DNA of 64,000 nucleotides, from the IMG/VR virus record IMGVR_UViG_3300023181_000025, positions 62,001 to 126,000 of that record; one strand, 5' to 3'. Each line of letters begins with the position of its first letter. Positions within the stretch are counted from its first letter, which is position 1. Positions 7,263 to 36,510 of this stretch are shown here, piece after piece. Position numbers and translations under genes: made by a program. A model generated the notes under the pieces. That model did not search any database, was not told the origin of the DNA, and worked only from the letters and a program-made list of their open reading frames with translations.

Positions 7263-7369
7263 TTTTAAATTCCTTTTACCGTTGGAAACCTATTTACACT
7301 AAAAAAATCTCCCCATCAAAAGTTATAAATCTTTTACTTTCAAGAGTAATTTTTATAAGTAATTGATTA

Positions 7370-15687: not shown

Positions 15688-16188
15688 ATGAGCACTTTTA
15701 AAAATAGACAAAATAAATGTTTCGATACGGTTTGTGGCCAAAAAATTTGGAAGTCTCGAAATGTAGCGGTTGCGACTTGTATCTTGCGCCCAAAGCCCCA
15801 AGAAGACTCAAAATTACAAATTCTTGCCATCGAAAGAGGCCCCGCCGTAACCGACACAGGTAAATTTTGTTTTCCCTGTGGGTATCTAGATTGGGATGAA
15901 ACCGTTGAACAAGGGGCGCTTAGAGAAGTTTTTGAAGAATCCAACATTTCACTTTCCGAAGAAGATTTAGAGTTTCAATATGTAAACAGTGACCCAAATT
16001 CCGAACTTCAGAATGTTACCATGCATTTTATTGCATACGCTCTTGACGGGGAAGAAATCTCTGGCAAGAATGCAGAAGAAGGTGAGATTACCAGTGTTAG
16101 GTGGGTTGATATCGAAAATATCAAAGATTATATTTGGGCTTTTAATCATGATAAAATTGCACTAAATTACTTACGCCATGTCCTTTGA
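15688..16188 (+). CDS. Nudix hydrolase
   Basis: GYLDWDETVEQGALREVFEESNI Nudix box. Confidence 0.92.
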   Translation: MSTFKNRQNKCFDTVCGQKIWKSRNVAVATCILRPKPQEDSKLQILAIERGPAVTDTGKFCFPCGYLDWDETVEQGALREVFEESNISLSEEDLEFQYVNSDPNSELQNVTMHFIAYALDGEEISGKNAEEGEITSVRWVDIENIKDYIWAFNHDKIALNYLRHVL

Positions 16189-16371
16189 TATAAAAATTAT
16201 TAATTACTTAGAAAGGCTCGCGGGTTTGAAGGCTAAAATAAATACGCGTTATTATGGTTCAGTAGAAGCTATTACTGAAAAAGGCGAAAAAGTTATTGTC
16301 CCAGATAATAATTTTGAATATTTGTCAGAAAGTAATTCCCATAGTAATAATACTGGTGTAAAATAAAAAGT

Positions 16372-16487
16372 ATGAGCGTATGTAATTCCAAATTTACCCA
16401 TAAGACAGGAGCGAGTAATCGTTATCTGGGGTAAGATTTGTATTTATATACTTCTCTTTTAAACCCCACTTTAAAGTGGGTTTTTTT
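16372..16487 (+). promoter_or_regulatory. attenuator-like unit: 20-aa leader ORF (16372-16434) + intrinsic terminator
   Basis: MSVCNSKFTHKTGASNRYLG*; CCCACT-ttaa-AGTGGG-T7; leader end TGGGGT complements ACCCCA in terminator arm. Confidence 0.5.
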
Positions 16488-16559
16488 GTTCTTTGACATT
16501 AAATATTTTATTTATCTTGACAGATAGAGTGTATTATCATACACTCATGCCAAGATTAA

Positions 16560-16631
16560 CTTGACTTAGCTGAGATGGATTAGCATGAATTTGAAACATT
16601 CACTAGGGAGGATCGTTACCTCCAGTCAAGG
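16560..16631 (+). tRNA. tRNA-Phe(GAA)
   Basis: acceptor CTTGACT/AGTCAAG, loop TTGAAAC. Confidence 0.85.
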
Positions 16632-16638
16632 CTTAAAT

Positions 16639-16711
16639 TGCGTATTGGTAGATTGGTTTCATACAGGAATCTGCAAAATTTCAGAAATGGGTTCGATTCC
16701 CATATACGCAT
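16639..16711 (+). tRNA. tRNA-Cys(GCA)
   Basis: TGCGTAT/ATACGCA, loop CTGCAAA, TTCGATT. Confidence 0.9.
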
Positions 16712-17056
16712 CTTATGATTGAGGAATGGAAAAGAGTCTTAACCAAGGTAACTGTTTTTCCATTGGCAACAATTGATTCAGTATTTTTTATCTTAAAAGA
16801 TTCTCAAAAAACTATTGACTTTATTACTACTTGTAGTAAAACAGGGGTGCAACCAATAAAAACATTGGTAAGCCTTAAAAACTTATTAAAATATGAATAT
16901 CGAAGACGCATTGAAAGTTTTATTGACTCCGGACGGTAAAGGGGCCAAAAGAAAAGCAGTGATCTTATCAGAACTTTGTGTTACAGCAAATGCTAATTTA
17001 GTTCGTGATATCATTGAAAAAATGTTGAAGAATAAGAAATTAGTGTAAATATATCT

Positions 17057-17128
17057 GGGTTGATAGCTTAATCGGTAAAGCCTTCGATTGTGAATCGAAC
17101 CTCGGGAGATCGTAGCTCCCTCAACCCT
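17057..17128 (+). tRNA. tRNA-His(GTG)
   Basis: GGGTTGA/TCAACCC, TTCGA-TTGTGAA-TCGAA; no encoded G-1. Confidence 0.85.
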
Positions 17129-17133
17129 CAGCA

Positions 17134-17736
17134 ATGTTTTACGATTTTATAGAAGCAGGATTATATCAGTTTGAGTCGCTGTCAAAAAGGGGCGACCTGC
17201 AAAAGGGTATTGTTATTGAACCGATAACTGATATTATAAACAAAACAGAAGTAGGAAAATATGTTTTCAAAGAGAACTCTGCAATTGACGGAGAAAGCCG
17301 CATAGATCATAGATTTTATGTTGACGATGAATTGAGAATAAAATATGATCTCCCTTCTTGGATTTGTAGTTTGTCGTCTTTTACTCAAGTTCATCCTCTG
17401 GTTGAAAAAGAATTTAATCAAAGGGGCATTTTTCTTTCGGAGATTAAATTGAGGCAAGTGGATGTTGTTACTTGGGAAATTATATTTCAAAAATACAATG
17501 TTGTTGGAGTAAATGTATTGAAATTAAATAGTTTTAAAAGAGATTGTAAGATTCTTGAATTATTTCTTGACCAAGCAGAAAAGACAGCCATAGTTCTTCC
17601 GGAGAAGATAATTTATCATACTCTTTACGAAAAGGATATTAATTACGTCGAAAGCTCATACAAGAGACTAAAGGAACTAGGTTATAAGATAGAAATAATA
17701 GGGATAGAAACGATCGCAACCAAAAATGAAAATTAA
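17134..17736 (+). CDS. FkbM-like methyltransferase (divergent)
   Basis: YDFIE.G, GIVIEP, V..LK.....DC.IL. Confidence 0.5.
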   Translation: MFYDFIEAGLYQFESLSKRGDLQKGIVIEPITDIINKTEVGKYVFKENSAIDGESRIDHRFYVDDELRIKYDLPSWICSLSSFTQVHPLVEKEFNQRGIFLSEIKLRQVDVVTWEIIFQKYNVVGVNVLKLNSFKRDCKILELFLDQAEKTAIVLPEKIIYHTLYEKDINYVESSYKRLKELGYKIEIIGIETIATKNEN

Positions 17737-18412
17737 ATACTATACAGTAGGTGGGGCGATAAGGGACGAACTACTTGGAGTTAAAAGTAAAGATATTGAT
17801 TTTGCAGTAGAGGCTTCAAGCTATGAAGCGATGAGAGAGGATCTAATTTCCAAAGGTATTGAGATTTTTCAGGAGCGTCCCGATTTTTTTGCAATTAGAG
17901 GAAAGCATCCGAAATTGGGCGCGGTTGATTATACATTGTGTAGAAAAGAAGGATTTTATTCTGATGGACGTAGACCAGACAGTGTTACGATCTGTTCAAT
18001 TGAAGAAGAGCTTTCCAGAAGGGACTTTTCGATCAACTCGATGGCCAAAAATGAAGAAGGAATTTTAATTGACCCATTTGATGGGGCGCGGGATTTAGAA
18101 AATAATCTTTTGAGATGTGTTGGTAGTTCTTACGAAAGATTTTCCGAAGATTCCCTTCGATTAATTAGAGCTATTCGATTTTTCATAACCAGAGGGTTTC
18201 GCCTTCATGAGGACATATGTTATTGTTTGAGAGATGAATTTCTTTTGGAAAAAATTAAAAATATTTCAATTGAAAGAATCTATGAAGAGTTGACAAAGTG
18301 TTTCGCTTATGATAGCTTTGCGACACTTCAGTTTTTCAGAGAATATCGTAAGTTGGAAAAGGTTGTTTTTGAAGACATCGGATTAAAATTGACACCAAAA
18401 ATAATCAAGTAG
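17726..18412 (+). CDS. cca: tRNA nucleotidyltransferase (class II CCA-adding, short form)
   Basis: VGGAIRD.LLG...KDIDF, RRDFSINSMA, DPFDG..DL, EDSLRLIRAIRF, ERIYEEL. Confidence 0.9.
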   Translation: MKIKYYTVGGAIRDELLGVKSKDIDFAVEASSYEAMREDLISKGIEIFQERPDFFAIRGKHPKLGAVDYTLCRKEGFYSDGRRPDSVTICSIEEELSRRDFSINSMAKNEEGILIDPFDGARDLENNLLRCVGSSYERFSEDSLRLIRAIRFFITRGFRLHEDICYCLRDEFLLEKIKNISIERIYEELTKCFAYDSFATLQFFREYRKLEKVVFEDIGLKLTPKIIK

Positions 18413-18417
18413 AATAT

Positions 18418-18489
18418 GCCTTCCTAGCTCAAGTTAGAGCAAGCCCCCGAGGGGGCATAAGGTTTGTGGTTCATGTCCACGGGGAGGCG
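18418..18489 (+). ncRNA. tRNA-like RNA with tetraloop instead of anticodon loop
   Basis: GCCTTCC/GGGAGGC, D-arm GCTC/GAGC, T-arm; GCCCC-CGAG-GGGGC. Confidence 0.7.
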
Positions 18490-18521
18490 CAGAAAATATA
18501 TAAAAATATTATTTTATATAT

Positions 18522-18592
18522 GCCTCAATAATTCAATGGTAGAATTCTAGCTTTGTAATCTAGGAACGAGGGTTCGATTCCCTCTTGAGGCT
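18522..18592 (+). tRNA. tRNA-Thr(TGT)
   Basis: GCCTCAA/TTGAGGC, loop TTTGTAA. Confidence 0.88.
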
Positions 18593-18858
18593 CTTAACTC
18601 TTTAAATATCAACATATTACAACATGATTACATTTTTCCAATTAACATTTGCAGGAATTATTATAATGATGCTGTTTGATATTTTTTGGTTATCAGAATA
18701 TATTTTCAATAAGTCATTTCATAGAGTGGTTTACAATCGTATTTTAAAATTTAATGATAAAGGTTTCTTTGGCCGTTCCCATTCTATTGCATTGTGGACA
18801 TATATTTTGTGCCCGCCGATTTGGATCGCGGCATATTTATTAAATACATATTAAGTTA

Positions 18859-19461
18859 ATGAAAAACATTGCCGTCATAATGACCATGGAAGGCTATAGC
18901 CTTGTCAATTCAGAAGTATTTACTGAAAATAATCCTAATACCCCTGTTTACTATTTGTATGGGGACGCATCCAAAGAAAAAGGCAAAAGAAATATTGATA
19001 GGCTCGTAAAGAAGTGGTGGGAATCCGAAGGTAAAGAATTAGATTTTGAATACGCCTTATTTATGGAATGGGATGTATTGTTTGATGAGAAAATTGAAAA
19101 TATATTTTCAGAAGATTCCGATTTTGAAGTAAAAACTTTAATACAGGATGGGAGTGGCTGGATTGGATTCCGAGACAGAAGAAAAATTTTATCAGAATTT
19201 AAAACTTTAGTAGGAGTTGGCCCGCTTTGTTTGTTTAGAATTAGCCGAAAATGCTTAGAAGTTATTTTTAATCGAAAAAATATTGATGCTTTGTATGCTA
19301 AAGATATGGCGGCGGGCCTTAGATTTGGTTCACTCATTAATAGTTTTAGTTTTCAAATAAAAGAATTGGATAATATTAAAGGTGTTGATTGGGGTGGCGA
19401 AAATAAAGTCGTAAAAGGCAAGGGTGTTTGGCACCCAGTAAAAAATGTAGATTTTAGTTGA
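18859..19461 (+). CDS. putative glycosyltransferase-like protein
   Basis: EWDV motif, C-terminal WHPVK. Confidence 0.4.
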   Translation: MKNIAVIMTMEGYSLVNSEVFTENNPNTPVYYLYGDASKEKGKRNIDRLVKKWWESEGKELDFEYALFMEWDVLFDEKIENIFSEDSDFEVKTLIQDGSGWIGFRDRRKILSEFKTLVGVGPLCLFRISRKCLEVIFNRKNIDALYAKDMAAGLRFGSLINSFSFQIKELDNIKGVDWGGENKVVKGKGVWHPVKNVDFS

Positions 19462-19490
19462 CAATAATCTAAAAATAGTGTAAATTTCAT

Positions 19491-19564
19491 TGCGGGTTAG
19501 ACTGGAGGTGGTTCCAGCCAAGTTTCATAAGCTTAGGAGATCAGTTCGATTCTGATACCCGCAA
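19491..19564 (+). tRNA. tRNA-Met(CAT)
   Basis: TGCGGGT/ACCCGCA, loop TTCATAA. Confidence 0.85.
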
Positions 19565-19637
19565 CTCAAAAACAATTAAAAAGCTAATTGACTGTTAGTA
19601 AATGTATTGTTCTCTTTCGCTAGTCACTAAAGAGTTT

Positions 19638-19708
19638 CGCGCATTCGTCTAATGGTAAGATGCCTCAAAAACATGGGGTGAAAGGTGATTCGATTTCATC
19701 GTGCGCAA
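19638..19708 (+). ncRNA. tRNA-like RNA, 6-nt A-rich loop without U33
   Basis: GCGCAT/GTGCGC, D-arm with TGGTA, TTCGATT; CCTCA-AAAACA-TGGGG. Confidence 0.65.
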
Positions 19709-19714
19709 CATAAT

Positions 19715-19804
19715 TCCCATCGGGCTGGCTAGAGAAGGCTCTCGACTGTTAATCGAGTGGCACCGAATTAAGTAGGTGGCTAGGGGCGGAACCTAGGATG
19801 GGAG
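19715..19804 (+). tRNA. tRNA-Asn(GTT) with long variable arm
   Basis: TCCCATC/GATGGGA, CTCGA-CTGTTAA-TCGAG, atypical T-loop. Confidence 0.75.
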
Positions 19805-19854
19805 CAAATATTTCTTGACTTATCCAATAAATCAGGTAATATACAAAAAGATTA

Positions 19855-19932
19855 GCGGGAATAGCTCAATGTAGAGCGCGACTTGGTTTTAAAAATCCCG
19901 TCGAGGCAGCGGTTCAAACCCGTTTTCCCGCA
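19855..19932 (+). ncRNA. tRNA-like RNA with enlarged anticodon arm
   Basis: GCGGGAA/TTCCCGC, normal D/T arms, CGAC-17 nt-GTCG. Confidence 0.7.
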
Positions 19933-19936
19933 CAAA

Positions 19937-20014
19937 AACTCGGTCGTCTAATAAAAATTAGGGCACCACTCATCGGTAGTGGAAATAAAGGTGAAAGGCC
20001 TTTCCGGGTTGCCA
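19937..20014 (+). tRNA. atypical tRNA-Arg(TCG)-like, CCA encoded
   Basis: AACTCGG/CCGGGTT-G-CCA; CCACT-CATCGGT-AGTGG (A33). Confidence 0.6.
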
Positions 20015-20040
20015 TTTATAATGAATTTATTCATTGTGAC

Positions 20041-20150
20041 GCTGAATGACGGTTCTATTAGATATATTAAAAATAAATTGGCGCTCTGGCCTCTTCGTTT
20101 GCTTACTCATAAAGTATATCTTATACCAGATTCAATATCTGGGTTCAGCA
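20041..20150 (+). ncRNA. tRNA-like RNA with large insert in anticodon arm
   Basis: GCTGAAT/GTTCAGC, T-arm CCAGA-TTCAATA-TCTGG, AGATATA/TATATCT enclosing ~45 nt. Confidence 0.55.
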
Positions 20151-20164
20151 CATTGTAATATAAT

Positions 20165-20236
20165 GGGGGTAGAGCTTGTTAGGAGAAGCACTCGGCTTTT
20201 AACCGATAGAACTGGGTTCGAATCCCAGTGCCCCTA
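20165..20236 (+). tRNA. tRNA-Lys(TTT)
   Basis: loop CTTTTAA, GGTTCGAATCCC. Confidence 0.88.
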
Positions 20237-20251
20237 CATTTAATATTAATA

Positions 20252-20330
20252 GCGAGTATCACATAGAGGTCGATTGTGCCTAACTTCCAATTAGGAATAC
20301 CACGCGTGAGTTCGAATCTCACTACTCGCA
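20252..20330 (+). tRNA. tRNA-Gly(TCC)
   Basis: GCGAGTA/TACTCGC, CCTAA-CTTCCAA-TTAGG. Confidence 0.88.
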
Positions 20331-20549
20331 CATATTTATAATGAAAGAGCCAAATATTATAGTAAGATTGATTCTTTGTTTAATTTCTCCTATAAAATGG
20401 AGAGAAAGGCTGGTTTTAGGCAAGTGTTTTGTTATATTATATAGAGAAAGTAGAAACGATAGTTTGGCCTTCGAGCTAAAAGACAGAATAAATGAGTTGT
20501 GGGAAAAAGAATACGAAAAATGGTGGAAGTTTAAAGCGAAATATTTTTA

Positions 20550-20661
20550 GCCTTCGAAGCAGACGGTTCGATTCCGTCGCCTAGAGATAGGTCCATGGAT
20601 GGTATAAAGCTTACGGTGACATGGTTTGACTCCATATCGGGTTCAATTCCCGACGAAGGCT
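20550..20661 (+). ncRNA. tRNA-like RNA with two T-arm hairpins
   Basis: GCCTTCG/CGAAGGC; GACGG-TTCGATT-CCGTC at D position and TCGGG-TTCAATT-CCCGA at T position. Confidence 0.65.
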
Positions 20662-20669
20662 CAGTAATA

Positions 20670-20761
20670 GGGTAACTAACTCAAGCGGTCTTGAGACTCG
20701 CCTTGAAAGCGATGAGTTCCAGTAAACATTCTGGAATGGGGATCGACACCTCAGTTGCCCG
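20670..20761 (+). tRNA. tRNA-Ser(TGA)
   Basis: loop CTTGAAA, long variable arm, G73. Confidence 0.88.
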
Positions 20762-20862
20762 CTTTTGTGGTTAGGCATTTGTTTCATATTGGTTTGAGGG
20801 TAGTCCCTCCGCAGTCGAAAGCGTTATCATGCCACCTCGCCAATTTATTGGCGAGGGTGAAT

Positions 20863-20947
20863 GGGTTGTAAATCGGACAGGCGTGCCGAGCTTTGTTGCT
20901 AACAAAAGGGACCGGAAACGGTTGGATTTCGAATATTCTGCAACCCG
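20863..20947 (+). tRNA. tRNA-Ser(GCT)
   Basis: loop TTGCTAA, long variable arm ACCG-GAAA-CGGT. Confidence 0.82.
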
Positions 20948-21006
20948 CACGGAAATTTATAAATAAGATTTCCAAAAATTGTCACAGATAAATAAAATAT
21001 TAATTA

Positions 21007-21080
21007 GGGGTCTTAGCTCAATTGGTAGAGCAGTGCGTTTGCAACGCGAAGGTTGTAGGGTTCGAGTCCCTCAGATTCCA
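21007..21080 (+). tRNA. tRNA-Ala(TGC)
   Basis: GGGGTCT start, G3:U70, loop TTTGCAA. Confidence 0.92.
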
Positions 21081-21083
21081 CAT

Positions 21084-21168
21084 GGAGTATTATGTAAACT
21101 GGTGTTTACGGTTGCTTGGAAAGCAACAGGCCGTTAGTTCGGCAAGGGTTCAATTCCTTAATGCTCCG
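21084..21168 (+). tRNA. tRNA-Ser(GGA)
   Basis: GTTGC-TTGGAAA-GCAAC, long variable arm. Confidence 0.88.
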
Positions 21169-21341
21169 CAGAACTAATATTATGAAAACAACTCATCAAT
21201 TCGCCCTCAAGTTAAACGGAAAAAAGCCGGGCCGATAAAATGATTGAATATTTAGATTACTTAATTAAGAGTCAGACAAAAATACCCGTTTCCAATCAAT
21301 GTTTCGCGGTAATAGTTTTTGATAGCATTAAAAATAAATAT

Positions 21342-23951: not shown

Positions 23952-24022
23952 GGAACGTTTATATATGGGTATTGTAATAGCCTGTCGAGTTAGAGAAAGA
24001 GGTTCGGGTCTCCTACGTTCCG
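23952..24022 (+). tRNA. tRNA-Asp(GTC)
   Basis: GGAACGT/ACGTTCC-G, loop CTGTCGA; weak D and T arms. Confidence 0.7.
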
Positions 24023-24027
24023 CAACA

Positions 24028-24055
24028 AAAAGCCACTAATTACTTGGTGGCTTTT
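24028..24055. terminator. bidirectional intrinsic terminator
   Basis: AAAAGCCAC...GTGGCTTTT between convergent units. Confidence 0.75.
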
Positions 24056-26936: not shown

Positions 26937-27551
26937 ATGAAAGGTAAAATCCTAAAGCTCAATAAATACTATTTCCCCGTTTCAGTTTCTGATTATAAAG
27001 AAATTATAAAAAATATATTTAGCGAGGCAGTATACCCTATTGATATTGTATACGAATTAAACGAAGACGGATCTCCAAATATGGAGGAAATCGCCTATTT
27101 TCAACCAATTAAGACTTGGGATGAATGGTCTAAGTTAGAAATCCGCGATTTCGATGAGTCCATTAAAGGCGTCAAAGGTTCTTATAGAATGCCGTCTGTT
27201 GTAATTTGCGCTGACTACAGCAAGATTAAATGGAACAAAGTGGTCTTTCCGACGAAACAAAATATTTGGCAAAGAGACAACTATATTTGCCAATATACTG
27301 GAAAAAAATTAAATAAAGAAACCGTTACTGTTGACCATATTGTCCCAAAATCAAGGGGCGGAAAAGATTGTTGGTTTAATCTTGTTGCGGCGGACAGAGA
27401 AGTCAATAGGGTTAAAGCCGACAGAACTCCAGAGGAATGCGGACTTAAATTAATTAGACAGCCTTTTATTCCAAAAACAAACGCACTTTCTCTCACTTTT
27501 TTAGAAGCTCGTCCAGAATGGACCAAATTTATTCCAGAAAAAACAATGTAA
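26937..27551 (+). CDS. HNH endonuclease (McrA-like)
   Basis: NI..RD.Y.CQYTG, TVDHIVPKSRGG...W.NLV, N..KADRTPEE. Confidence 0.9.
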   Translation: MKGKILKLNKYYFPVSVSDYKEIIKNIFSEAVYPIDIVYELNEDGSPNMEEIAYFQPIKTWDEWSKLEIRDFDESIKGVKGSYRMPSVVICADYSKIKWNKVVFPTKQNIWQRDNYICQYTGKKLNKETVTVDHIVPKSRGGKDCWFNLVAADREVNRVKADRTPEECGLKLIRQPFIPKTNALSLTFLEARPEWTKFIPEKTM

Positions 27552-27558
27552 AGAAATT

Positions 27559-28194
27559 ATGAAAAAAGATTATACACATATAGCAATGGTAATTGATAGA
27601 AGCGGGTCTATGACCAGAGCGTGGAGCGATGTTTTAGGAGGTTACACACAATATATTGAAGACCAAAAGAAACAGGCGGGTAAATGTTCGCTAACAACTA
27701 CCGTTTTTGATACATCTATTGATGTAATTGAAGACTTTACAGATATTCAAGATGTTAATGTCGAATTAAACGCATTCCCTAGGGGCGGAACGGCTTTGTT
27801 GGACGCAATAGGAGTGACTATTTCTTCAGTTGGTAAAAAATTATCAAATCTGCCTGAAGAGGAAAGACCAGAAAAGGTTCTAATAATTGTTCAAACAGAT
27901 GGTCTGGAAAATGCAAGCAAAGAATACAGGGCTTATAGAATTAAAGAAATGATTAAAGAACAGGAAACAAAGTATAACTGGGAATTTTCTTTCATCGGAG
28001 CTTCATTAGAATCAGTTAATGCCGCAGAATCTTGGGGATTCAATAAAGATAATTCAGCCGTTTACTCCACCTCTAATTCGTTTGAAACGATGAGCCTCTT
28101 AAGTGAAAAAACATCAAATTATCGCTCAATGGAATGTTTGGAAAAATCATTCGCATATTCTACTGAAGAAAGATCTAAATTAGTTGAAAAATGA
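27559..28194 (+). CDS. vWA-domain protein
   Basis: DRSGSM, PRGGTALLDAIG, TDGLENASKEY. Confidence 0.88.
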   Translation: MKKDYTHIAMVIDRSGSMTRAWSDVLGGYTQYIEDQKKQAGKCSLTTTVFDTSIDVIEDFTDIQDVNVELNAFPRGGTALLDAIGVTISSVGKKLSNLPEEERPEKVLIIVQTDGLENASKEYRAYRIKEMIKEQETKYNWEFSFIGASLESVNAAESWGFNKDNSAVYSTSNSFETMSLLSEKTSNYRSMECLEKSFAYSTEERSKLVEK

Positions 28195-28437
28195 TTACAG
28201 TAAAAGAATTAATAAAAAAACTAGAAAATGAAGACCAGGAACGCGTCATTATTATGTCTCGCGATCCAGAAGGAAACAGCTACTCGCCTTTTGAAAATTT
28301 TTGGACAGGGGCTTATTCTGAAGAAGGTAGGGAAGCTGGCCTTGATCAATTAACTCAAGAGGATGAAGATTATGGATTCACGGAAGATGATATACTAGAA
28401 GGAACCCCGGCTTTAATTCTTCAACCGTCCTATTAAT

Positions 28438-28875
28438 ATGATTAAGAAAATTTTAAATTATGTAAGTTTTGTGTTATTTTTCTGGAAATTTAATGATGGT
28501 TTATCGCCTTCATTTAAACAGATGGGGATGTTTTCAGATTGTCAGGCTTCTCGCGAGAAGGTAGATCGTGTTTATTCGCGAAATTCGGGAGCAACGACTT
28601 TTTTATCAACTTATTCTGCGTGGTTGGCTGGAAGAGGCTTCAAGGTTGGGTTCTTTACCTCTCCCTATGGGAAGATGAAGTATTTCTCTGGTGTCGCTAA
28701 TATTAAAAATATTAAATCAGCGGGAGCATATGTTTTCCATACGCGGAAAATGGACGAAAAGGCGAAAGGATTGTCATTAGACTATATTATTGTTGACAAT
28801 ACTGAGGTAGACATCCCACTTATTTTAACTCTTAATGGCGCGGGCAAGAAATTGATTCGTATTGATACAATTTAA
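28438..28875 (+). CDS. short terminase-ATPase-like protein
   Basis: SRNSGATT (cf. gp17 SRQ.GKT), KGLSLDYIIVD. Confidence 0.4.
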   Translation: MIKKILNYVSFVLFFWKFNDGLSPSFKQMGMFSDCQASREKVDRVYSRNSGATTFLSTYSAWLAGRGFKVGFFTSPYGKMKYFSGVANIKNIKSAGAYVFHTRKMDEKAKGLSLDYIIVDNTEVDIPLILTLNGAGKKLIRIDTI

Positions 28876-28892
28876 GTGTAATTATAATTACT

Positions 28893-29060
28893 ATGATCAC
28901 TTCGATTCTTACCCTATTAGTTGTTTTCCTTTTACTTTATTTAGTATATTGGTGTGTTGGAAAGTTTATAAGTGGCACGCCATATCAAGTTGTGGGAATT
29001 ATATTGGCGATTGTTTTTATAATTTATGCCCTTAATTCTTTTGGAATAGCACTGCCGTAA
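28893..29060 (+). CDS. 55-aa two-helix membrane protein (absent from ORF track)
   Basis: MITSILTLLVVFLLLYLVYW...IILAIVFIIYAL; preceded by AGTGTAA. Confidence 0.7.
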   Translation: MITSILTLLVVFLLLYLVYWCVGKFISGTPYQVVGIILAIVFIIYALNSFGIALP

Positions 29061-29114
29061 AAATGCGGAGATTTATTTCTTCCCAAATACAAAAAATTGT
29101 GTAATAATACAAAC

Positions 29115-29244
29115 ATGAACTTAAGACAGTTACAACCGATTATTCTTCGCGAGTGGTATCCACTCGTTAAGGCGGTAATGTAAATATTTTTAGTTTAATT
29201 AAAATTTATATTAACCGCTTTTCTGTAAAGATTAGCGGTTTTTT
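29115..29244 (+). promoter_or_regulatory. attenuator-like unit: 22-aa leader ORF (29115-29183) + intrinsic terminator
   Basis: MNLRQLQPIILREWYPLVKAVM*; AACCGCT...AGCGGTT-TTTT; leader AAGGCGGTAA complements TTAACCGCTT. Confidence 0.55.
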
Positions 29245-29369
29245 GTTGGGTTTTTACAAGTTGCACCCGAAGCAATAAGCAGTCGCGGGAATGCGAGTTT
29301 GGTTCTAAAAGGGAACGGAAGGTTAAAGAAAATTATTGATAGGTTTAATACCCTGTCAATAAACATAAT

Positions 29370-29440
29370 ACGGTTATAGTTCAATGGTAGAACGACTGTC
29401 TCCAAAATAGTATATCAGGGTTCGATTCCTTGTAGCCGTG
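29370..29440 (+). tRNA. tRNA-Trp(CCA)
   Basis: ACGGTTA/TAGCCGT, loop CTCCAAA. Confidence 0.9.
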
Positions 29441-29591
29441 CATATATAAAATATTTTCAAGAAAAAAATTGACAAATTGTAATGTTTCAAGTATAGTATT
29501 TTTATGAATGAAGAACAAGCATACGAAAAGATACAGGATTTGATTGAACTAGCTAAGGAACTTATTGATTCCGGGCATTATACCTTCGAGG

Positions 29592-29671
29592 AAGTTGTTA
29601 ATGAGCTTTCTTGTTTGGAGTAACGCTAGACTATAGGCTTAGAAATTGCGGGTTTGAGTCCCGTCAACTTA
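29592..29671 (+). pseudogene. degenerate tRNA overlapping the end of a 39-aa ORF (29504-29623)
   Basis: AAGTTG/CAACTT, T-arm GCGGG-TTTGAGT-CCCGT. Confidence 0.35.
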
Positions 29672-29677
29672 ACATAA

Positions 29678-29749
29678 CGGAAATGGGCAGGCTGGGTATG
29701 CGACTTGTTTGGGGCAAGAACGAGATGATTTCGATTATCATATTTCCGA
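29678..29749 (+). tRNA. tRNA-Pro(TGG)
   Basis: CGGAAAT/ATTTCCG, loop TTTGGGG. Confidence 0.85.
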
Positions 29750-29752
29750 CAG

Positions 29753-29838
29753 TAGCTAGTAGCATAAAAGGGTAATGCGACTTACTTCGAAGATCTCGGG
29801 TAAGTGGATGAAGGAATTAATGCTACCTTCCTAGCTTG
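29753..29838 (+). ncRNA. tRNA-like RNA with extended anticodon arm and enlarged T-loop
   Basis: AGCTAG/CTAGCT, GCAT/ATGC, ACTTAC-14 nt-GTAAGT, GAAGG-11 nt-CCTTC. Confidence 0.6.
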
Positions 29839-29898
29839 TGTTTTTGATAGAAAACAACTTGACGAATCCAATAAATTCGCTAAGATGGTTTCAACAAA

Positions 29899-29972
29899 GC
29901 GCCGTTAGCTCAGCGGTTAGAGCGGTCCGACTCTAAATTGGATTGTCGGGGTTTCGAATACCTCACGGCGCA
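29899..29972 (+). tRNA. amber suppressor tRNA (anticodon CTA)
   Basis: GCGCCGT/ACGGCGC, canonical D/T arms, TCCGA-CTCTAAA-TTGGA. Confidence 0.88.
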
Positions 29973-30185
29973 CTTTTGACTTAAAAGAAAACATGGTGAC
30001 TAAATGATTATTGTCATGGTTAAGCTAGAAAATACTGCTAGCAGATTATTTAGAGTGATGCGATAGCTTAGCAAGCTGAGATTATTCAAGGGTTGACAAC
30101 AGTTGCCTGATAATCTCAAATATCTAAAGAAAGTTAAAATATTTTCACTTTTTTCTTCCAAAATCTAAACTTTTAGTGTAAATAT

Positions 30186-30362
30186 ATGAAGCCAAAAATG
30201 ATTACAAGAGTTACAGCAACAGAATTTGAAACCGATGATGGAGTTATCCATGATATTCCGTTTGAATTAGATGAAGTTCCAACAGTTGAGGATTTTCAAC
30301 GAATCTATGACGAATGGTTCAGATTATTTCAACAGAAAGGATTGATAGACAAAAATGGATAA
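30186..30362 (+). CDS. 58-aa acidic protein at IS left end (absent from ORF track)
   Basis: MKPKMITRVTATEFETDDG...; stop overlaps tnpA start. Confidence 0.6.
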   Translation: MKPKMITRVTATEFETDDGVIHDIPFELDEVPTVEDFQRIYDEWFRLFQQKGLIDKNG

Positions 30363-30987
30363 AAAGATTCTATCAATTAGTGATGCTGCATCTATCTTAG
30401 GCGTTTCTGATGAAACTCTTAGAAATTGGGAAAGAGAAGGCAAAGTGATCCCATTTCATACGGAAGGTGGCCATAGACGCTATTATAGAACCGATATTGA
30501 GAAGTTGGCAGGAATCTATGTAGAAACTGTTAAAGAGTCTAGTGGTAAGCGTGTGGGTATCTATTGCCGTGTTAGCTCACATGAGCAGAAGACCAAAGGT
30601 GATTTAGAAAGACAGGTTGGCAGAATGACTACAGAGGCACTAAAACGTGGTTATTCTATTGTTGCGGTTTTTGATGAGGTAGGTTCAGGAATGAACGACA
30701 ATAGGAAGAAATTACAGAAACTTTTTGAATTGGTTGAGAAGAAAGAAATTGATGTAGTCTTAATCGAACATAAAGATAGATTGTCAAGGTTTTGTTTTAA
30801 TTATCTATTATCTTATTTTAATTCCTATGGGGTTAGAATTGAAAAAGTTGAAGAGGTAATGAGTAAGAGTTTCGAGAATGAACTCGTAGAAGATATTTTG
30901 TCTTTGATGGCTAGTTTTTCTGCTAAAATCTATGGACGTAGAAGTTCGCAGAATCGAAAGAAGAAAGAAAAGGAGGAACCAGAATGA
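30355..30987 (+). CDS. tnpA: IS607 serine-recombinase transposase
   Basis: MerR HTH (TLRNWE.EGK, GGHRRY), YCRVSS..QK.DL.RQ, KDRLSRF, ELVED, FSAKIYGRRS. Confidence 0.95.
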   Translation: MDKKILSISDAASILGVSDETLRNWEREGKVIPFHTEGGHRRYYRTDIEKLAGIYVETVKESSGKRVGIYCRVSSHEQKTKGDLERQVGRMTTEALKRGYSIVAVFDEVGSGMNDNRKKLQKLFELVEKKEIDVVLIEHKDRLSRFCFNYLLSYFNSYGVRIEKVEEVMSKSFENELVEDILSLMASFSAKIYGRRSSQNRKKKEKEEPE

Positions 30988-31691
30988 GACAGGAAATTTT
31001 ATATGGCGACTGTTTAGAGCTATTAAAAAACATTCCTGATAAATCAATTGATTTCATTTGTATTGACCCGCCATACGGTTTAACCGCTCCGAAATGGGAT
31101 TCTATTGTTTCTTTTGATTTTTTATGGGCTGAATTTAATAGAATTGGCAAAAATGGATATGTCGCGGCTATATTTGGCTGTCAACCATTCACTACGAAAG
31201 TTATTTGCTCTAATATAGAACAATTTAAATATTGTTGGTATTGGAATAAAAACCAAGGAACAAATTTCTTTCATGCCAAGAGAATGCCAATTAGAAAAGT
31301 TGAAGAAATATCTATTTTTGGCGGCAAAACATATAATCCACAAATTACGGATGGGCATATTCCTACCAATTCTGCTAAAGGCTGCTCCAACGGAAAAGCA
31401 TATCATGGAACCAATACGCGAAATTACGAAGGTGGGAAAACAACGCGATTTCCTGACAATATTTTAAATTTTAAATGCGTGGATAATTATTCGAGAGTTC
31501 ATTCCAGTCAAAAACCAGTTGAGCTTTTGGAGTATCTTATCAATACATATACTAATGAGAATGATGTTGTTTTGGATAGCTTTGCTGGTTCAGGCTCAAC
31601 TTTAGTAGCGGCAAAAAATCTCAATCGTCAATTCATAGGTATCGAAAAAGAAAAAGAATATTATTATATTTGTTTAGAAAGATTGAAATGA
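30984..31691 (+). CDS. N6-adenine/N4-cytosine DNA methyltransferase (beta class)
   Basis: DPPY precedes H..QKP..LL and VLDSFAGSGST. Confidence 0.92.
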   Translation: MRQEILYGDCLELLKNIPDKSIDFICIDPPYGLTAPKWDSIVSFDFLWAEFNRIGKNGYVAAIFGCQPFTTKVICSNIEQFKYCWYWNKNQGTNFFHAKRMPIRKVEEISIFGGKTYNPQITDGHIPTNSAKGCSNGKAYHGTNTRNYEGGKTTRFPDNILNFKCVDNYSRVHSSQKPVELLEYLINTYTNENDVVLDSFAGSGSTLVAAKNLNRQFIGIEKEKEYYYICLERLK

Positions 31692-32908
31692 TTTTACGCG
31701 CATACAAAACCGAGATTAGTGTTAATAACAAGCAACAAACCTTGTTATTGCAACATATCGGTTGTGCAAGATGGGCATATAATTGGGCATTAGCTAAAAA
31801 GAAAGAACAATTCGATAAAAAAGAAAAGATTCCTAATGCTATTGAACTTCATAGGGAATTAAACAAGTTAAAACAGTCGGAAGTTCCTTGGATGTATAAT
31901 TCAAGTAAGACTTCTCCACAAAATGCACTTAGAGATTGCGATAAGGCATTTCAAAATTTTTTCGCTCGTTGTAAGAGAAAAGTCAAAGGCAAGAAAGGAT
32001 TTCCTAAATTTAAATCCAAAAAGAACGAAAAACAGTCGTTTAGATTAGACGGAGCAATTTCAGTAGAGTCTGATTGTATTAAATTGCCACGAATCGGTAA
32101 ACTTAGATTAGCCGAGAAAGATTATATTCCCACTGATTGTAAAATACTATCTGCTACCGTCTCTAAACGAGCGGACAAATGGTTTATATCTATTCAAGTA
32201 GAAACGCCTGACAGAGAGCATCTTGACGCTAAGAACGAGGTAGTAGGAATTGATTTGGGAATTAAAACTTTGGCTACTTGTTCTGATGGAGCCATTTATG
32301 AAAATCCAAAAGCCTTAAAGAAAAATCTTAAAAGACTAAAACGTAAACAAAAACAATTAAGCAGAAAGAACAAGGGAATCAAAAACTATGGAAAAGTAAA
32401 ACAAAAATTAGCAAAATTACATTATCACATATCAAACATTCGTAAAGATTGCTTACATAAAATCACTTCTAAAATTATAGACGAAAACCAAGTCGTAGTT
32501 TTGGAAGATTTGAAAGTAAGCAATATGATGAAAAATCACTGTTTGGCGCAAGCTATCAGTGATGTTGGATTATTTGAATTTCGTCGTCAGATAGAATATA
32601 AAGCAAAATGGAATGGAAGAAAAGTTATCTTCGCGGATACCTTCTTTGCTTCCAGTAAGACTTGTAGCTGTTGCGGATGGAAAAATTCAGATTTGAAGTT
32701 GACAGATAGAATATTTGACTGTAAGATGTGTGATAATAAAATGGATAGAGATTTAAATGCAAGTTTGAATCTAAAACAAATTTATAGGGAAAGTTCTTCC
32801 CGAATTGACGCTTCTGGAGATGGGAGTTCATCAAACGCAAGTTTGGTTAGCCCGTCGTTGAACGAAGAATTTAACAAAAAATCGAGAGTTTATGTCCTAA
32901 AAAGATGA
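31688..32908 (+). CDS. tnpB: RNA-guided endonuclease TnpB
   Basis: RuvC GIDLG / VLEDL / DRDLNA intact; SSKTCSCCG...C..C zinc ribbon. Confidence 0.95.
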   Translation: MILRAYKTEISVNNKQQTLLLQHIGCARWAYNWALAKKKEQFDKKEKIPNAIELHRELNKLKQSEVPWMYNSSKTSPQNALRDCDKAFQNFFARCKRKVKGKKGFPKFKSKKNEKQSFRLDGAISVESDCIKLPRIGKLRLAEKDYIPTDCKILSATVSKRADKWFISIQVETPDREHLDAKNEVVGIDLGIKTLATCSDGAIYENPKALKKNLKRLKRKQKQLSRKNKGIKNYGKVKQKLAKLHYHISNIRKDCLHKITSKIIDENQVVVLEDLKVSNMMKNHCLAQAISDVGLFEFRRQIEYKAKWNGRKVIFADTFFASSKTCSCCGWKNSDLKLTDRIFDCKMCDNKMDRDLNASLNLKQIYRESSSRIDASGDGSSSNASLVSPSLNEEFNKKSRVYVLKR

Positions 32909-34053: not shown

Positions 34054-34125
34054 GCTGCCGTCTTCTACTGGCTAGGAAAGCAGGCTTTCAACCTGAAAAA
34101 GGCGGATCGTAACCGCTCGGCAGCA
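34054..34125 (+). tRNA. tRNA-Glu(TTC)
   Basis: GCTGCCG/CGGCAGC, loop CTTTCAA. Confidence 0.88.
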
Positions 34126-34127
34126 CT

Positions 34128-34199
34128 TTTAATGTAATATAAGATAGCATCCCCTGCAATTGTGGCGGGGTTGTTCTGGTTCAAATCCAGACATTAAAT
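34128..34199 (+). ncRNA. tRNA-like RNA with non-canonical anticodon loop
   Basis: TTTAATG/CATTAAA, TCTGG-TTCAAAT-CCAGA, CCTGC-AATTGTG-GCGGG. Confidence 0.6.
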
Positions 34200-34204
34200 C
34201 ATTA

Positions 34205-34291
34205 GCGTTGGTTGGGGATATTGGTAGTCCTCGCGGAGCTGTAACCTCCGAAACTAATAATTCATTGGACGTTCGATTCGTCTCCAGCGCA
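34205..34291 (+). tRNA. tRNA-Tyr(GTA)
   Basis: CGGAG-CTGTAAC-CTCCG, long variable region. Confidence 0.88.
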
Positions 34292-34294
34292 CTG

Positions 34295-34540
34295 GTAATT
34301 TTAAGGAGGTTGGCTTAGAAGTAGCAATCCTTTAAAAAGTAGAATCTATTCTCCGAATGACCGTAGTAACAACTTGAAGAGAAAATAGAGTTGCGAACGC
34401 TAAACGTAAGCTAGGACTAGGGAGGTAAATCAATATGAGGTTGTAAGAACCTATGAATTGACATAGGCATATCGTGCGGCACTCCGTAATTGGTAAGGCT
34501 GCAAACCGTTCTTTTGGTGTAAAAACATACTTTTAATTAC
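34295..34540 (+). ncRNA. 23S rRNA GTPase-centre (H43/H44, uL11-binding) mimic with ~170-nt insert
   Basis: GGAGGTTGGCTTAGAAGTAGCAATCCTTTAAAAAGT ... GTGTAAAAACATACT, closed by GTAATT/AATTAC. Confidence 0.75.
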
Positions 34541-34572
34541 AAATTGAAACAATAAAATTTATTGTTTCAAAA

Positions 34573-34645
34573 GGCTCGTTGGTGAAATTGGATATCACTC
34601 CAGATTACGACTCTGAGGTTCCTGATTCGAGTTCAGGGCGGGCTA
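34573..34645 (+). tRNA. tRNA-Arg(ACG)
   Basis: loop TTACGAC. Confidence 0.88.
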
Positions 34646-34848
34646 CATGAATAACATTCCAAGAAGAAATGATATGAGCCAATGGGTTGAGGCTGAGGGA
34701 TTGATTTTTGATGCCCTTGTAGGGGTTGAATCTATGGGCGCAGACCCATTGCTGACAGATGCGGTTGTTTTGCTTGAGAAAGCGAGAAGTAAAGTGGCGG
34801 ATTATGTTGACAAGATGAATGAAATATTGTAACTTATAAAGAACATTA

Positions 34849-34922
34849 GCCGTGTTAGCTCAATTGGATAGAGCAGGAGGTTTCTACCCTCAAGGTTATG
34901 GGTTCGAGTCCCTTATGCGGCA
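34849..34922 (+). tRNA. tRNA-Arg(TCT)
   Basis: loop TTTCTAC, canonical arms. Confidence 0.9.
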
Positions 34923-34974
34923 CTTTAAAACATTTTTCTGAGTTCGAATCTCAGGTTGTCTATAGGAATAAAAA

Positions 34975-35256
34975 ATGAAATTACCAGTTCTATATGATGA
35001 GATTCCACCAAAAGAACGGTGGAAAGTTAGAGAAGAATATATCAAAGTTCAAGACGGTCTATGTCAACATTGCAAAAACCCCTTAGTGGGACTAGCTTCG
35101 ACAGAAGTAATGAGTAAAAAAATAAATTTAAACTTATTTCCTGAAGCATTTCTAGATCATCCAATCCATCTTCATCATTGCCATAAAACAGGCTTGACTA
35201 TTGGGGCTGTTCATGCTAGATGTAATGCAGTTTTGTTTCAGTATTATGGAGAATAA
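34975..35256 (+). CDS. endonuclease VII/HNH-like small nuclease
   Basis: Q.GLC.HC, HLHHCH.TG...G.VH.RCN. Confidence 0.7.
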   Translation: MKLPVLYDEIPPKERWKVREEYIKVQDGLCQHCKNPLVGLASTEVMSKKINLNLFPEAFLDHPIHLHHCHKTGLTIGAVHARCNAVLFQYYGE

Positions 35257-35682
35257 AAAAATAGATAACTTTCCTTTTGTTCCTGTTTTCTTTACGGAGG
35301 AAGAGGCAGAATTAGTTGATTGGGATGCAGTTTTTTCTGACGGTTTATTTGATGCACTTCAAACCAACAAAAATTTCAATAAAGATTTTGGAGGCAACTT
35401 TGTTGATAAAAATATGAAAATTTGTGGAAAAATAAGCGCACAAAAGACTAAAAAAAGATTTGAAAAAGGTTAATTACATACAGTGTCATCTCCAGAAGGG
35501 CGATAAACATCACATGGCGTGGATTCCTGAAAAGTTTGCCGTTATTGGAAAATTTATTAAAATTCATGAGGATGATGGTTGGGAAGTAAAAGGTGATGGC
35601 GGCGGAGGCAAAATAACCGCTAAAGAAGCCGATGAACTTTCCCAACTTTATAAGAAAACAAGAAAAGCTTCCGATATTTAAT

Positions 35683-36087
35683 ATGAACGAAAAAACTAAA
35701 CTATATTGCTTTCAAAAGGAAATAGTAGAACTAATAAATTCAAATAAAGACTCCCGAATTTTGGTTCTTATGGCTAGAGGCGGCGGGAAATCATTTTTAT
35801 TTGATTGGCTGACGCCAATAAAGGCAAGGAAGGAAAACGGCATTAGTCGATTTGCAAAATTCAACGGGACAACATTTATTGATGAAGTTGTTGATGAATA
35901 TTTACCTGAGAACCCGGTAGTTGTTTTTTCTTCTTATAGCGAATTATTGGATTATGGAGAATTTGATTTGATAATTAAGTTTGATATTAATAGGATATCA
36001 AGGGAATTATTTAACTTTTACGACAAAGATTTGGTAAAGTTTGTTCCCGAAGATGTTTATAGAAGAGATTTTTTGTGTAGAAAATAA
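35683..36087 (+). CDS. short terminase/SF2-ATPase-like protein
   Basis: LY.FQ.EI, MARGGGKS, FIDE. Confidence 0.45.
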   Translation: MNEKTKLYCFQKEIVELINSNKDSRILVLMARGGGKSFLFDWLTPIKARKENGISRFAKFNGTTFIDEVVDEYLPENPVVVFSSYSELLDYGEFDLIIKFDINRISRELFNFYDKDLVKFVPEDVYRRDFLCRK

Positions 36088-36092
36088 AATTT

Positions 36093-36186
36093 GATATCCA
36101 TTAGTAATAATGCCGAGCGGTGCGGAGGACGCTCTATTGCGTCGGAACCTGAAGAACAATAAACCGGCAAAATCTCAGGGGATATT
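36093..36186 (+). ncRNA. structured RNA with glycine-aptamer-like motifs
   Basis: GATATCC/GGATATT; GCGGAGGA, CCTGAAGAACAA, AAATCTCAGG. Confidence 0.35.
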
Positions 36187-36193
36187 TTTTAAA

Positions 36194-36269
36194 TGTGGAA
36201 TAGCTTAGCCCGGTTAAAGCCCGCGACTGATAATTGCGAGATCGTTCGGTTCAAATCCGACTTCCACAA
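36194..36269 (+). tRNA. tRNA-Ile(GAT)
   Basis: CGCGA-CTGATAA-TTGCG. Confidence 0.88.
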
Positions 36270-36270
36270 C

Positions 36271-36341
36271 TGCCCTTTAGTTTAATGGTAAAACTACACG
36301 TTTTGAGCGTGTCTTTCTCGGTTCGAGTCCGGGCGGGGCTT
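36271..36341 (+). tRNA. tRNA-Gln(TTG)
   Basis: ACACG-TTTTGAG-CGTGT. Confidence 0.88.
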
Positions 36342-36434
36342 CATAAATAAATAACCCGAGCGAGGGCTGATATCCAAGATGCCGAATCTCTACCTGTGCC
36401 AACGGGTAAGTTCTAAATTCAGAATTTATTTATA

Positions 36435-36506
36435 GTTCTTCTCGTCTAAAGCTTAGGACGGCTCCCGCGTCAGGGGGTTATTGTGGCTCGCGCCCACAGA
36501 GGAACG
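36435..36506 (+). ncRNA. tRNA-like RNA with ambiguous anticodon and atypical T-loop
   Basis: GTTCTTC/GAGGAAC, GTCT/GGAC, TGTGG-CTCGCGC-CCACA. Confidence 0.6.
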
Positions 36507-36510
36507 CTTA

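Follow-up and report, generated by a model that had tools for sequence, protein, structure and literature searches.

In enterobacteria, the amino-acid biosynthetic operons trp, his, phe, thr, leu, ilvGMEDA and ilvBN are controlled by leader-peptide attenuators. A short translated leader comes first, followed by four successive segments that pair 1:2, 2:3 and 3:4, the last pairing forming an intrinsic terminator. The stop codon is placed so that a ribosome finishing the leader masks region 2, and the regulatory codons lie in and just before region 1. The thr and ilv leaders are multivalent, responding to more than one amino acid. In the pheST attenuator of E. coli, the pheM leader peptide is rich in codons for one tRNA and controls, by attenuation, a gene of the translation apparatus that serves that same tRNA. 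T-box riboswitches also sense tRNA status and decide between a terminator and an antiterminator upstream of genes of the translation apparatus. Short structured RNAs are also encoded next to tRNA genes, such as species 1 and 2 (RNA C and D) of the phage T4 tRNA gene cluster. Others are released by attenuation, such as rnTrpL of Sinorhizobium, which acts in trans (10.1101/606483).

How phages regulate their own tRNA genes is largely unknown, although phage tRNAs are now seen as tools for late protein synthesis and as counter-measures against host anticodon nucleases. Here, a large soil phage is described in which a tiny open reading frame and a predicted intrinsic terminator precede tRNA genes, in the layout of a leader-peptide attenuator. 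The tiny gene contains codons read by the tRNAs that follow, which suggests that it probably switches the tRNA genes on only when those tRNAs run short. The regulation itself is inferred from sequence.

Source and genomic setting

The window analysed is a stretch of 64,000 nucleotides, bases 62001-126000 of the 211,168-bp IMG/VR virus record IMGVR_UViG_3300023181_000025, which has terminal repeats and was assembled from a leaf-litter metagenome. All positions below are those of the window. The record represents a large tailed phage with 37.5% G+C whose terminase carries an intein, and which encodes ribonucleotide reductase, RNA ligase, a NUDIX hydrolase and a CCA-adding enzyme. About twenty tRNA genes lie on the + strand between 16.5 kb and 36.3 kb. 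Its genes have no Shine-Dalgarno signal, since 19 of 204 long ORFs have a match, against 9 in a control window. The sequence runs found to hold this phage were DNA runs only, and three leaf-litter DNA runs carry the same sequence with no differences. An attempt to identify the host through the IS607/TnpB insertion gave only short MAG contigs of mixed taxonomy.

Anatomy of module A

The element that prompted the analysis, termed module A, and the genes that follow it comprise these features:

29099-29104 (+), GTGTAA promoter-like motif after an A/T-rich stretch, 10 nt before the leader ATG; a sigma-70-like reading (TTCCCA-17-AATAAT with TG) spans 29080-29108.
29115-29183 (+), leader ORF of 22 codons, MNLRQLQPIILREWYPLVKAVM, from ATG 29115 to TAA 29181-29183; putative sensor codons are about 2-16, and the last codons and the stop lie in region 2.
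29116-29138 (+), region 1, the 5' arm of the long 1:2 hairpin, pairing with 29173-29197.
29144-29172 (+), tip hairpin inside the ORF, with core CGAGUGG/CCACUCG (arms 29150-29156 and 29160-29166).
29169-29185 (+), region 2, the 5' arm of the predicted antiterminator, covering the last four codons and the stop codon.
29204-29221 (+), region 3, which can pair either with region 2 (antiterminator) or, over 29213-29219, with region 4 (terminator).
29213-29246 (+), predicted intrinsic terminator, a 7 + 3 bp stem-loop (29213-29240; arms AACCGCT 29213-29219 and AGCGGTT 29234-29240) followed by T6 (29241-29246).
29370-29441 (+), tRNA-Trp(CCA), the first gene after the module.
29678-29973 (+), tRNA-Pro(TGG) at 29678-29750 and the amber-suppressor-type tRNA(CTA) at 29899-29973, each behind a sigma-70-like promoter.
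34054-36342 (+), the rest of array A, tRNA-Glu, Tyr, Arg(ACG), Arg(TCT), Ile and Gln, separated from the first part by an IS607-like insertion (30355-32908).

The original prediction had described the TGTGTAA motif (29098-29104), the 22-codon ORF with its internal hairpin, the terminator and an alternative pairing between the last leader codons and the terminator's 5' arm, and every one of these elements was confirmed in place. The alternative pairing is longer than had been described, as 29169-29185 pairs with 29204-29221 over 17 pairs with one bulged A at 29213. As a hairpin it reaches -16.1 kcal/mol, against -13.9 for the terminator. The terminator is the only strong + strand terminator inside this tRNA region apart from one at 24030.

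The pattern is not a chance one. The whole element folds at -42.4 kcal/mol (z = -5.3, with 0 of 200 shuffles as good), its minimum-energy fold being a long 1:2 hairpin (29116-29197) that encloses the ORF, followed by the terminator, and the terminator alone has z = -4.1. When the terminator's 5' arm was kept fixed and the upstream 88 nt were replaced by 4000 random windows of the same genome, duplex energies were -6.7 +/- 2.3 kcal/mol, against -17.4 observed between region 2 and the arm. Only 0.18% of the windows (p about 0.002) and 0 of 3000 dinucleotide shuffles were as good, and the four-segment layout is therefore real. An earlier ranking against all hairpin-plus-T-run candidates of the genome placed the antiterminator energy only 27th of 185, but the arm lengths differ among those sites, and this uninformative comparison was replaced by the fixed-arm controls.

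The GTGTAA motif is part of a genome-wide promoter-like motif. It is usually preceded by an A/T-rich stretch, often TTTTTA, and followed by ATA, and it lies 4-31 nt (mostly 4-16) before start codons and tRNA 5' ends across this genome and its relatives, including directly before tRNA-His, tRNA-Met and tRNA-Val. The same motif, 8-12 nt before the ATG, heads many genes in related phages, in one of which these include a virion structural protein and a minor tail protein. It is read here as a phage promoter element, probably of the late class, that gives nearly leaderless RNAs, although both the timing and the transcription start are inferred.

Recurrence of the module

The whole 211-kb genome was scanned for the motif, an ATG-ORF of 8-45 codons and a terminator within 70 nt of the stop. 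Only two units have the motif at -16 and a terminator about 30 nt after the stop, namely module A and a second unit, module B, with these features:

16356-16361 (+), GTGTAA motif, again exactly 10 nt before the ATG.
16372-16434 (+), leader ORF of 20 codons, MSVCNSKFTHKTGASNRYLG.
16427-16468 (+), predicted antiterminator, in which 16427-16436 (end of the ORF and the stop) pairs with 16455-16468; duplex p = 0.056.
16465-16487 (+), predicted terminator CCCACU/AGUGGG (16465-16480) and T7, -8.6 kcal/mol.
16560-21081 (+), array B, tRNA-Phe (80 nt beyond the terminator), Cys, His, Thr, Met, Lys, Gly and Ala, plus non-canonical tRNA-like genes, with genes of the CCA-adding enzyme between them.

Relatives were reached through the terminase and their tRNA regions were inspected. 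A third unit, module C, was found in G002, a 133.8-kb phage with terminal repeats whose terminase is about 42% identical. It lies at 1612-1746 of locus L096 of that phage and consists of GTGTAT, 10 nt, an ATG, 18 codons (MNYYPTNEQPQNTSIRVR), about 35 nt, and a terminator (-9.8 kcal/mol) followed by T6, with tRNA-Glu 25 nt further on. All three modules thus have GTGTAA/T, exactly 10 nt, ATG, 18-22 codons, about 30-35 nt and then a terminator. In four complete or large genomes, these are the only strong terminators within 500 nt upstream of a tRNA on the same strand; two further weak hairpins, 234-276 nt from a tRNA, lack the module layout. In each module the end of the ORF is complementary to the terminator's 5' arm and the stop codon lies inside region 2. 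The 2:3 complementarity of B (p = 0.056) and C (p = 0.045) is individually modest but goes the same way as in A, and 1:2 hairpins are predicted in all three.

The three modules are the only independent examples, and most related phages with tRNA arrays have none. No module was found in the other relatives examined (G001, G004 and L120-L126), nor in eight more distant phage contigs reached through the CCA-adding enzyme. A DNA alignment of modules A and B shows no convincing homology, and the modules are treated as analogous rather than alignable. Close relatives that would allow covariation of module A to be assessed were found neither in the phage database nor in IMG/VR, searched with the flanking 145-aa protein, the terminator string or the terminase alone. 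The 145-aa protein has no homologue in a set of 5.8 billion proteins, and a pattern search of JGI metagenomes for the leader peptide gave only the phage's own contig and a chance hit inside a gene.

Codon content of the leaders

Module C gave the clearest result. Two close relatives of G002, L137 and L138, whose neighbouring metallophosphatase is 89% identical in protein, keep the module and have tRNA-Asn, Glu, Thr, Tyr, Pro and Gln directly behind the terminator. Leader codons 2-13 are AAC, TAT, TAT, CCG, ACA, AAT, GAA, CAA, CCA, CAA, AAC and ACA, and all twelve are read by exactly those six anticodons under standard wobble rules. G002 itself lacks tRNA-Asn but keeps the Asn codons.

For the two modules of this genome, the array was taken as all default-ARAGORN tRNAs that follow on the same strand, a definition chosen after a first look at the data. 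Array A is Trp, Pro, Glu, Tyr, Arg(ACG), Arg(TCT), Ile and Gln, with the suppressor set aside, and array B is Phe, Cys, His, Thr, Lys, Gly and Ala, with Met set aside. Each leader has at least one codon for every tRNA of its own array. Leader A covers 8 of 8 tRNAs with 11 of 21 codons cognate, and under phage codon usage P(all covered) is 7e-4. Leader B covers 7 of 7 with 9 of 19 codons cognate (P = 1.4e-3). Leader C covers 6 of 6 in L137/L138 with 12 of 17 codons cognate; P(all covered) is 6.9e-3, and P(12 or more matches) is 9e-5. Among all 16-26-codon ATG ORFs of the same genomes, full coverage occurs in 2 of 710 (A), 4 of 710 (B) and 3 of 538 (C), the leaders themselves included. Shuffling each leader's own letters gives similar values. 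In leader A, eleven of codons 4-16 (R, Q, L, Q, P, I, I, L, R, E, W, Y, P) are cognate, and in leader B codons 7-14 are K, F, T, H, K, T, G, A.

The internal control is the most telling. Leader A matches array B at only two codons, and leader B matches array A at only two, and all four lie in the structural tail, beyond the sensor window. A broader match of leader B to all downstream tRNAs is not meaningful on its own, because the genome encodes tRNAs for most amino acids, and own-array against other-array contrasts were used instead. A stricter test, using only the tRNAs of the immediately adjacent cluster, is weaker for A and B (P = 0.03-0.2) and still strong for C (0.0014), with a combined value of about 7e-4. 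The four Leu codons of leader A have no tRNA in array A. Two small predictions held: the Asn and Ser(AGY) codons of leader B, at first unmatched, led to a relaxed scan that found non-canonical tRNA-Asn(GTT) and tRNA-Ser(GCT) candidates in array B, and the Asn codons of leader C correspond to a tRNA present in the close relatives but lost in one genome.

Conservation of module C

Between G002 and L137/L138 the module, from motif to U tract, is 94.8% identical (128 of 135). The neighbouring gene is 87.5% identical overall and 75% identical at third codon positions, and the tRNAs range from 64% to 100%. The 42 nt of codons 1-14 are unchanged. Three of the seven differences lie in the tail, where amino acids change (I-R-V to T-R-M), and one of them turns a U.G pair into U-A in a stem whose partner sequence, CAUCC, occurs both in the ORF and in the terminator arm. 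This is selection on the RNA and on the codons, not on a peptide sequence. A TnaC-like peptide-specific arrest was considered and dropped, because the three peptides are unrelated and the tail of module C changes amino acids between close relatives while the RNA pairing is kept.

Predicted folding with a ribosome on the leader

In silico folds were made of the RNA that exists just before the terminator's 3' arm is transcribed, and only of the part beyond the leading edge of a ribosome (P-site +15). With the A site on codons about 2-15, the probability that the terminator's 5' arm is sequestered by region 2 is 0.80-0.85 in A, 0.50-0.64 in B and 0.86-0.87 in C. With the ribosome at the last codons or the stop it is 0.2 or less in all three. 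In these folds the three modules behave like classical attenuators, and the switch point, at about codon 15-16, coincides with the end of the cognate-codon run in each leader. Without a ribosome, the 1:2 hairpin of B and C holds region 2 and the arm stays free (0.03 and 0.01-0.14), whereas in A the 2:3 pairing is so strong that it wins at equilibrium (0.83). Module A may therefore be leaky by default, although the order of folding could still favour 1:2. In full-length equilibrium folds the terminator mostly persists, and in A a 6-7 bp terminator is kept at most ribosome positions, so that any switch must be kinetic, as it is in the trp operon.

No acceptable promoter was found in the 125 nt between the terminator and tRNA-Trp, and tRNA-Trp at least should depend on read-through. 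Other tRNAs have their own promoter-like sequences: sigma-70-like promoters stand before Phe, before the 39-aa ORF that precedes Pro and before the suppressor tRNA, and GTGTAA stands before His, Met and Val. The modules could only add to the expression of such genes, and it is inferred that they would provide a conditional, probably late, supply on top of constitutive or early expression.

Interpretation

The favoured reading, held with moderate confidence, is that module A is a ribosome-mediated transcription attenuator that controls a phage tRNA array, one of at least two in this genome. In this view, a phage promoter of the GTGTAA type, probably late, starts an RNA whose first codons are the leader ORF, with almost no 5' leader and no Shine-Dalgarno site, as for the other genes of this phage. 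The first 13-16 codons would sample the codons read by the tRNAs encoded downstream on the same strand. If all those tRNAs are available and charged, the ribosome would run to the end of the ORF and cover region 2, region 3 would pair with region 4, and RNA polymerase would terminate at 29241-29246. If the ribosome is held at any sensor codon, it would cover region 1 and leave region 2 free to pair with region 3 before region 4 is made, and transcription would run into tRNA-Trp and the array. The result would be a negative feedback that tops up phage tRNAs when translation of their codons slows, for whatever reason, be it heavy late protein synthesis or loss or cleavage of host tRNAs.

The analysis itself establishes the sequence elements, their non-random complementarity, the repeated geometry, the conservation and the match between codons and tRNAs, while the transcription start, translation of the ORF, termination efficiency, the response of read-through to the supply of charged tRNA and the switch itself are inferred. 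It is very likely that the modules are real, selected, tRNA-matched leader units, and somewhat less certain, though more likely than not, that they act through intrinsic-terminator attenuation. The interpretation in the original prediction, that a translated leader gates downstream phage tRNAs on demand by sensing general ribosome stalling, is partly supported. Its core idea agrees with everything that sequence analysis could address, but general stalling is not what the data show. The leader has no run of a single amino acid, as had been stated, yet its codons are not unspecific, and the sensing would be specific and multivalent.

Among the alternatives, the one that survives best, although unlikely, is an independent small transcription unit of about 130 nt, a small RNA or a micropeptide gene with its own promoter and a constitutive terminator, which happens to sit beside tRNA genes like the small stable RNAs of unknown function in the T4 tRNA region and acts in trans without regulated read-through. 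The RNA does look like a typical small RNA, with a long 5' hairpin followed by a terminator hairpin and a U tail, the terminators are strong, full-length equilibrium folds keep them, and several downstream tRNAs have their own promoters. However, this reading does not explain why each ORF carries a codon for every tRNA of its own array and not of the other, why the ATG sits exactly 10 nt from the motif in all three modules, or why the end of the ORF is complementary to the terminator's 5' arm in all three. The three peptides are unrelated in sequence, and no Rfam family matches. The two readings are not exclusive, since a terminated leader RNA could also act in trans, as rnTrpL does (10.1101/606483).

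Also unlikely, and slightly less well placed, is the possibility that the leader is translated and senses the array's tRNAs but that the output is not read-through of an intrinsic terminator. Ribosome position could instead control processing or stability of the precursor, Rho-type termination, or firing of the tRNA promoter that overlaps or follows the terminator. The codon-tRNA match supports sensing but says nothing about the output. In module C the terminator abuts a TAAAAT -10-like box 7 nt before the tRNA, in module B sigma-70-like promoters follow directly, and in module A the ribosome-free state is ambiguous. Against this, GC-rich stems with U6-U7 tails, together with mutually exclusive 2:3 pairings placed at the stop codon, are what intrinsic attenuation needs, and they are found in all three modules.

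An ordinary operon-end terminator for the upstream + strand genes (26937-29060), with the ORF and the pairing as chance features of AT-rich intergenic DNA, is very unlikely: although those genes have only a weak hairpin of their own and a 20-codon open frame has by estimate roughly a 1 in 4 chance in DNA of this composition, the competing pairing and the codon match are non-random, the geometry is repeated in three modules, module C is conserved far above the neutral rate, and the promoter-like motif sits at gene-like spacing.

A broader reading, judged only slightly more likely than not, is that some large phages carry a tRNA supply sensor, in which each array is headed by a late-promoter-driven leader ORF with at least one codon for every tRNA of that array, and a ribosome hesitating at any of them prevents termination and turns the array on. 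This would be the first attenuation control of tRNA genes and a viral homeostat of decoding capacity, which would also respond to host defences that cleave or deplete tRNAs. If the element works as proposed, attenuation, a textbook mechanism known for amino-acid operons and one synthetase operon, has been adapted to tRNA genes themselves. The leader would be a readable list of the tRNAs it controls, giving a purely computational way to find such sensors and to predict operon membership, and it would offer a compact, portable sensor of codon-specific translation speed.

Comparison with known systems

The layout and logic are those of leader-peptide attenuation, and literature searches found no paper that links leader peptides or attenuators with phage tRNA genes. 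A permissive covariance-model search (cmscan, Rfam 15) of 14000-40000 found only tRNAs and chance hits, with nothing at 29098-29250 or 16356-16490, and no T-box or other Rfam family matched at E of 1 or less. A T-box binds uncharged tRNA directly and needs no ORF, while here the sensor would be a translating ribosome. The T4 RNAs have no reported coding frame or codon match and share no sequence similarity with the element, although the terminated 130-nt leader RNA could likewise have a function of its own.

The multivalent thr and ilv leaders and the pheST attenuator are the nearest precedents. Compared with the enterobacterial biosynthetic operons, the genes that would be regulated are tRNA genes of a phage and not biosynthetic enzymes. 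The leader samples 6-8 different codon families once or twice each instead of a run of one or two, the mRNA is inferred to be nearly leaderless and has no Shine-Dalgarno site, the signal would be tRNA supply as such and not amino-acid supply, and there is no sequence similarity. The pheST attenuator is the nearest in logic, namely feedback on decoding capacity, but it regulates an aminoacyl-tRNA synthetase and not tRNA genes, senses a single amino acid, and is cellular, not viral.

Promoter-like motif and initiation signals

An A/T-rich stretch followed by GTGTAA(ATA) is found throughout the window, lying 4-31 nt (mostly 4-16) before start codons and tRNA 5' ends. Examples occur at 7299(-), 11079(+), 17043(+), 19478(+), 23428(-), 23855(+), 26846(-), 28876(+), 30176(+), and 39177(-). 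The motif is shared with related phages, where it heads virion genes, and it is probably a late promoter that gives nearly leaderless RNAs. Together with the lack of Shine-Dalgarno sites, it hints at a host with SD-independent initiation.

Additional features of the tRNA region

Besides the motif, the following features were observed in and around the tRNA genes:

15688-16188, NUDIX hydrolase
17134-18412, apparently two-part CCA-adding enzyme (two adjacent ORFs)
57927-59279, RNA ligase
18418-18490, 19638-19709, 19715-19805, 19855-19933, 19937-20014, 20550-20762, 20863-20948, 21083-21169, 23952-24022, 34128-34200, and 36435-36507, non-canonical tRNA-like genes
24028-24055, perfect 12-bp palindromic hairpin, likely bidirectional terminator
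29245-29369, 125-nt spacer between the terminator and tRNA-Trp
29469-29623, near-consensus sigma-70 promoter and 39-codon acidic ORF
29899-29973, tRNA with anticodon CTA
30355-32908, IS607-like unit

The NUDIX hydrolase, the CCA-adding enzyme, and the RNA ligase form a tRNA repair and maintenance toolkit, as judged from the sequence. The many non-canonical tRNA-like genes were detected only with relaxed ARAGORN settings or with Rfam. They have odd anticodon loops, short insertions, or long arms; some may be functional, and others may be decayed copies. The palindromic hairpin has T runs on both strands and lies between the tRNA-Val unit and the convergent tail-fibre genes.

The spacer in front of tRNA-Trp holds a small GC hairpin (29283-29296) followed by GTTTGGTT, and no recognisable promoter was found in it. 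Further downstream, the near-consensus sigma-70 promoter (TTGACA-17-TATAGT) is predicted to drive the 39-codon acidic ORF, which ends 55 nt before tRNA-Pro. This is another small ORF heading a tRNA, but it has no terminator. The tRNA with anticodon CTA is of the amber-suppressor type, is called 'Pyl' by ARAGORN, and sits behind a sigma-70-like promoter; a relative (G001) has one too. The IS607-like unit, which comprises a MerR-HTH serine recombinase, an N6/N4 DNA methylase, and TnpB, is inserted in the middle of tRNA array A, the array that follows the leader ORF and terminator described here. TnpB relatives 88-89% identical occur on short contigs of MAGs of mixed taxonomy.

Comparison with related phages

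Outside the window, the large terminase subunit of this phage (912 aa; G000:C1:13560-16298, locus L002) carries an intein (PF14890), and relatives occur with and without it. Differences around the module were also seen when locus L136 was compared with L137 and L138, relatives of G002, a phage that carries a third leader module of this kind. G002 has lost tRNA-Asn precisely at the junction behind the terminator, yet its leader keeps three Asn codons. L137 and L138 also carry an extra 240 nt or so between the upstream gene and the module.
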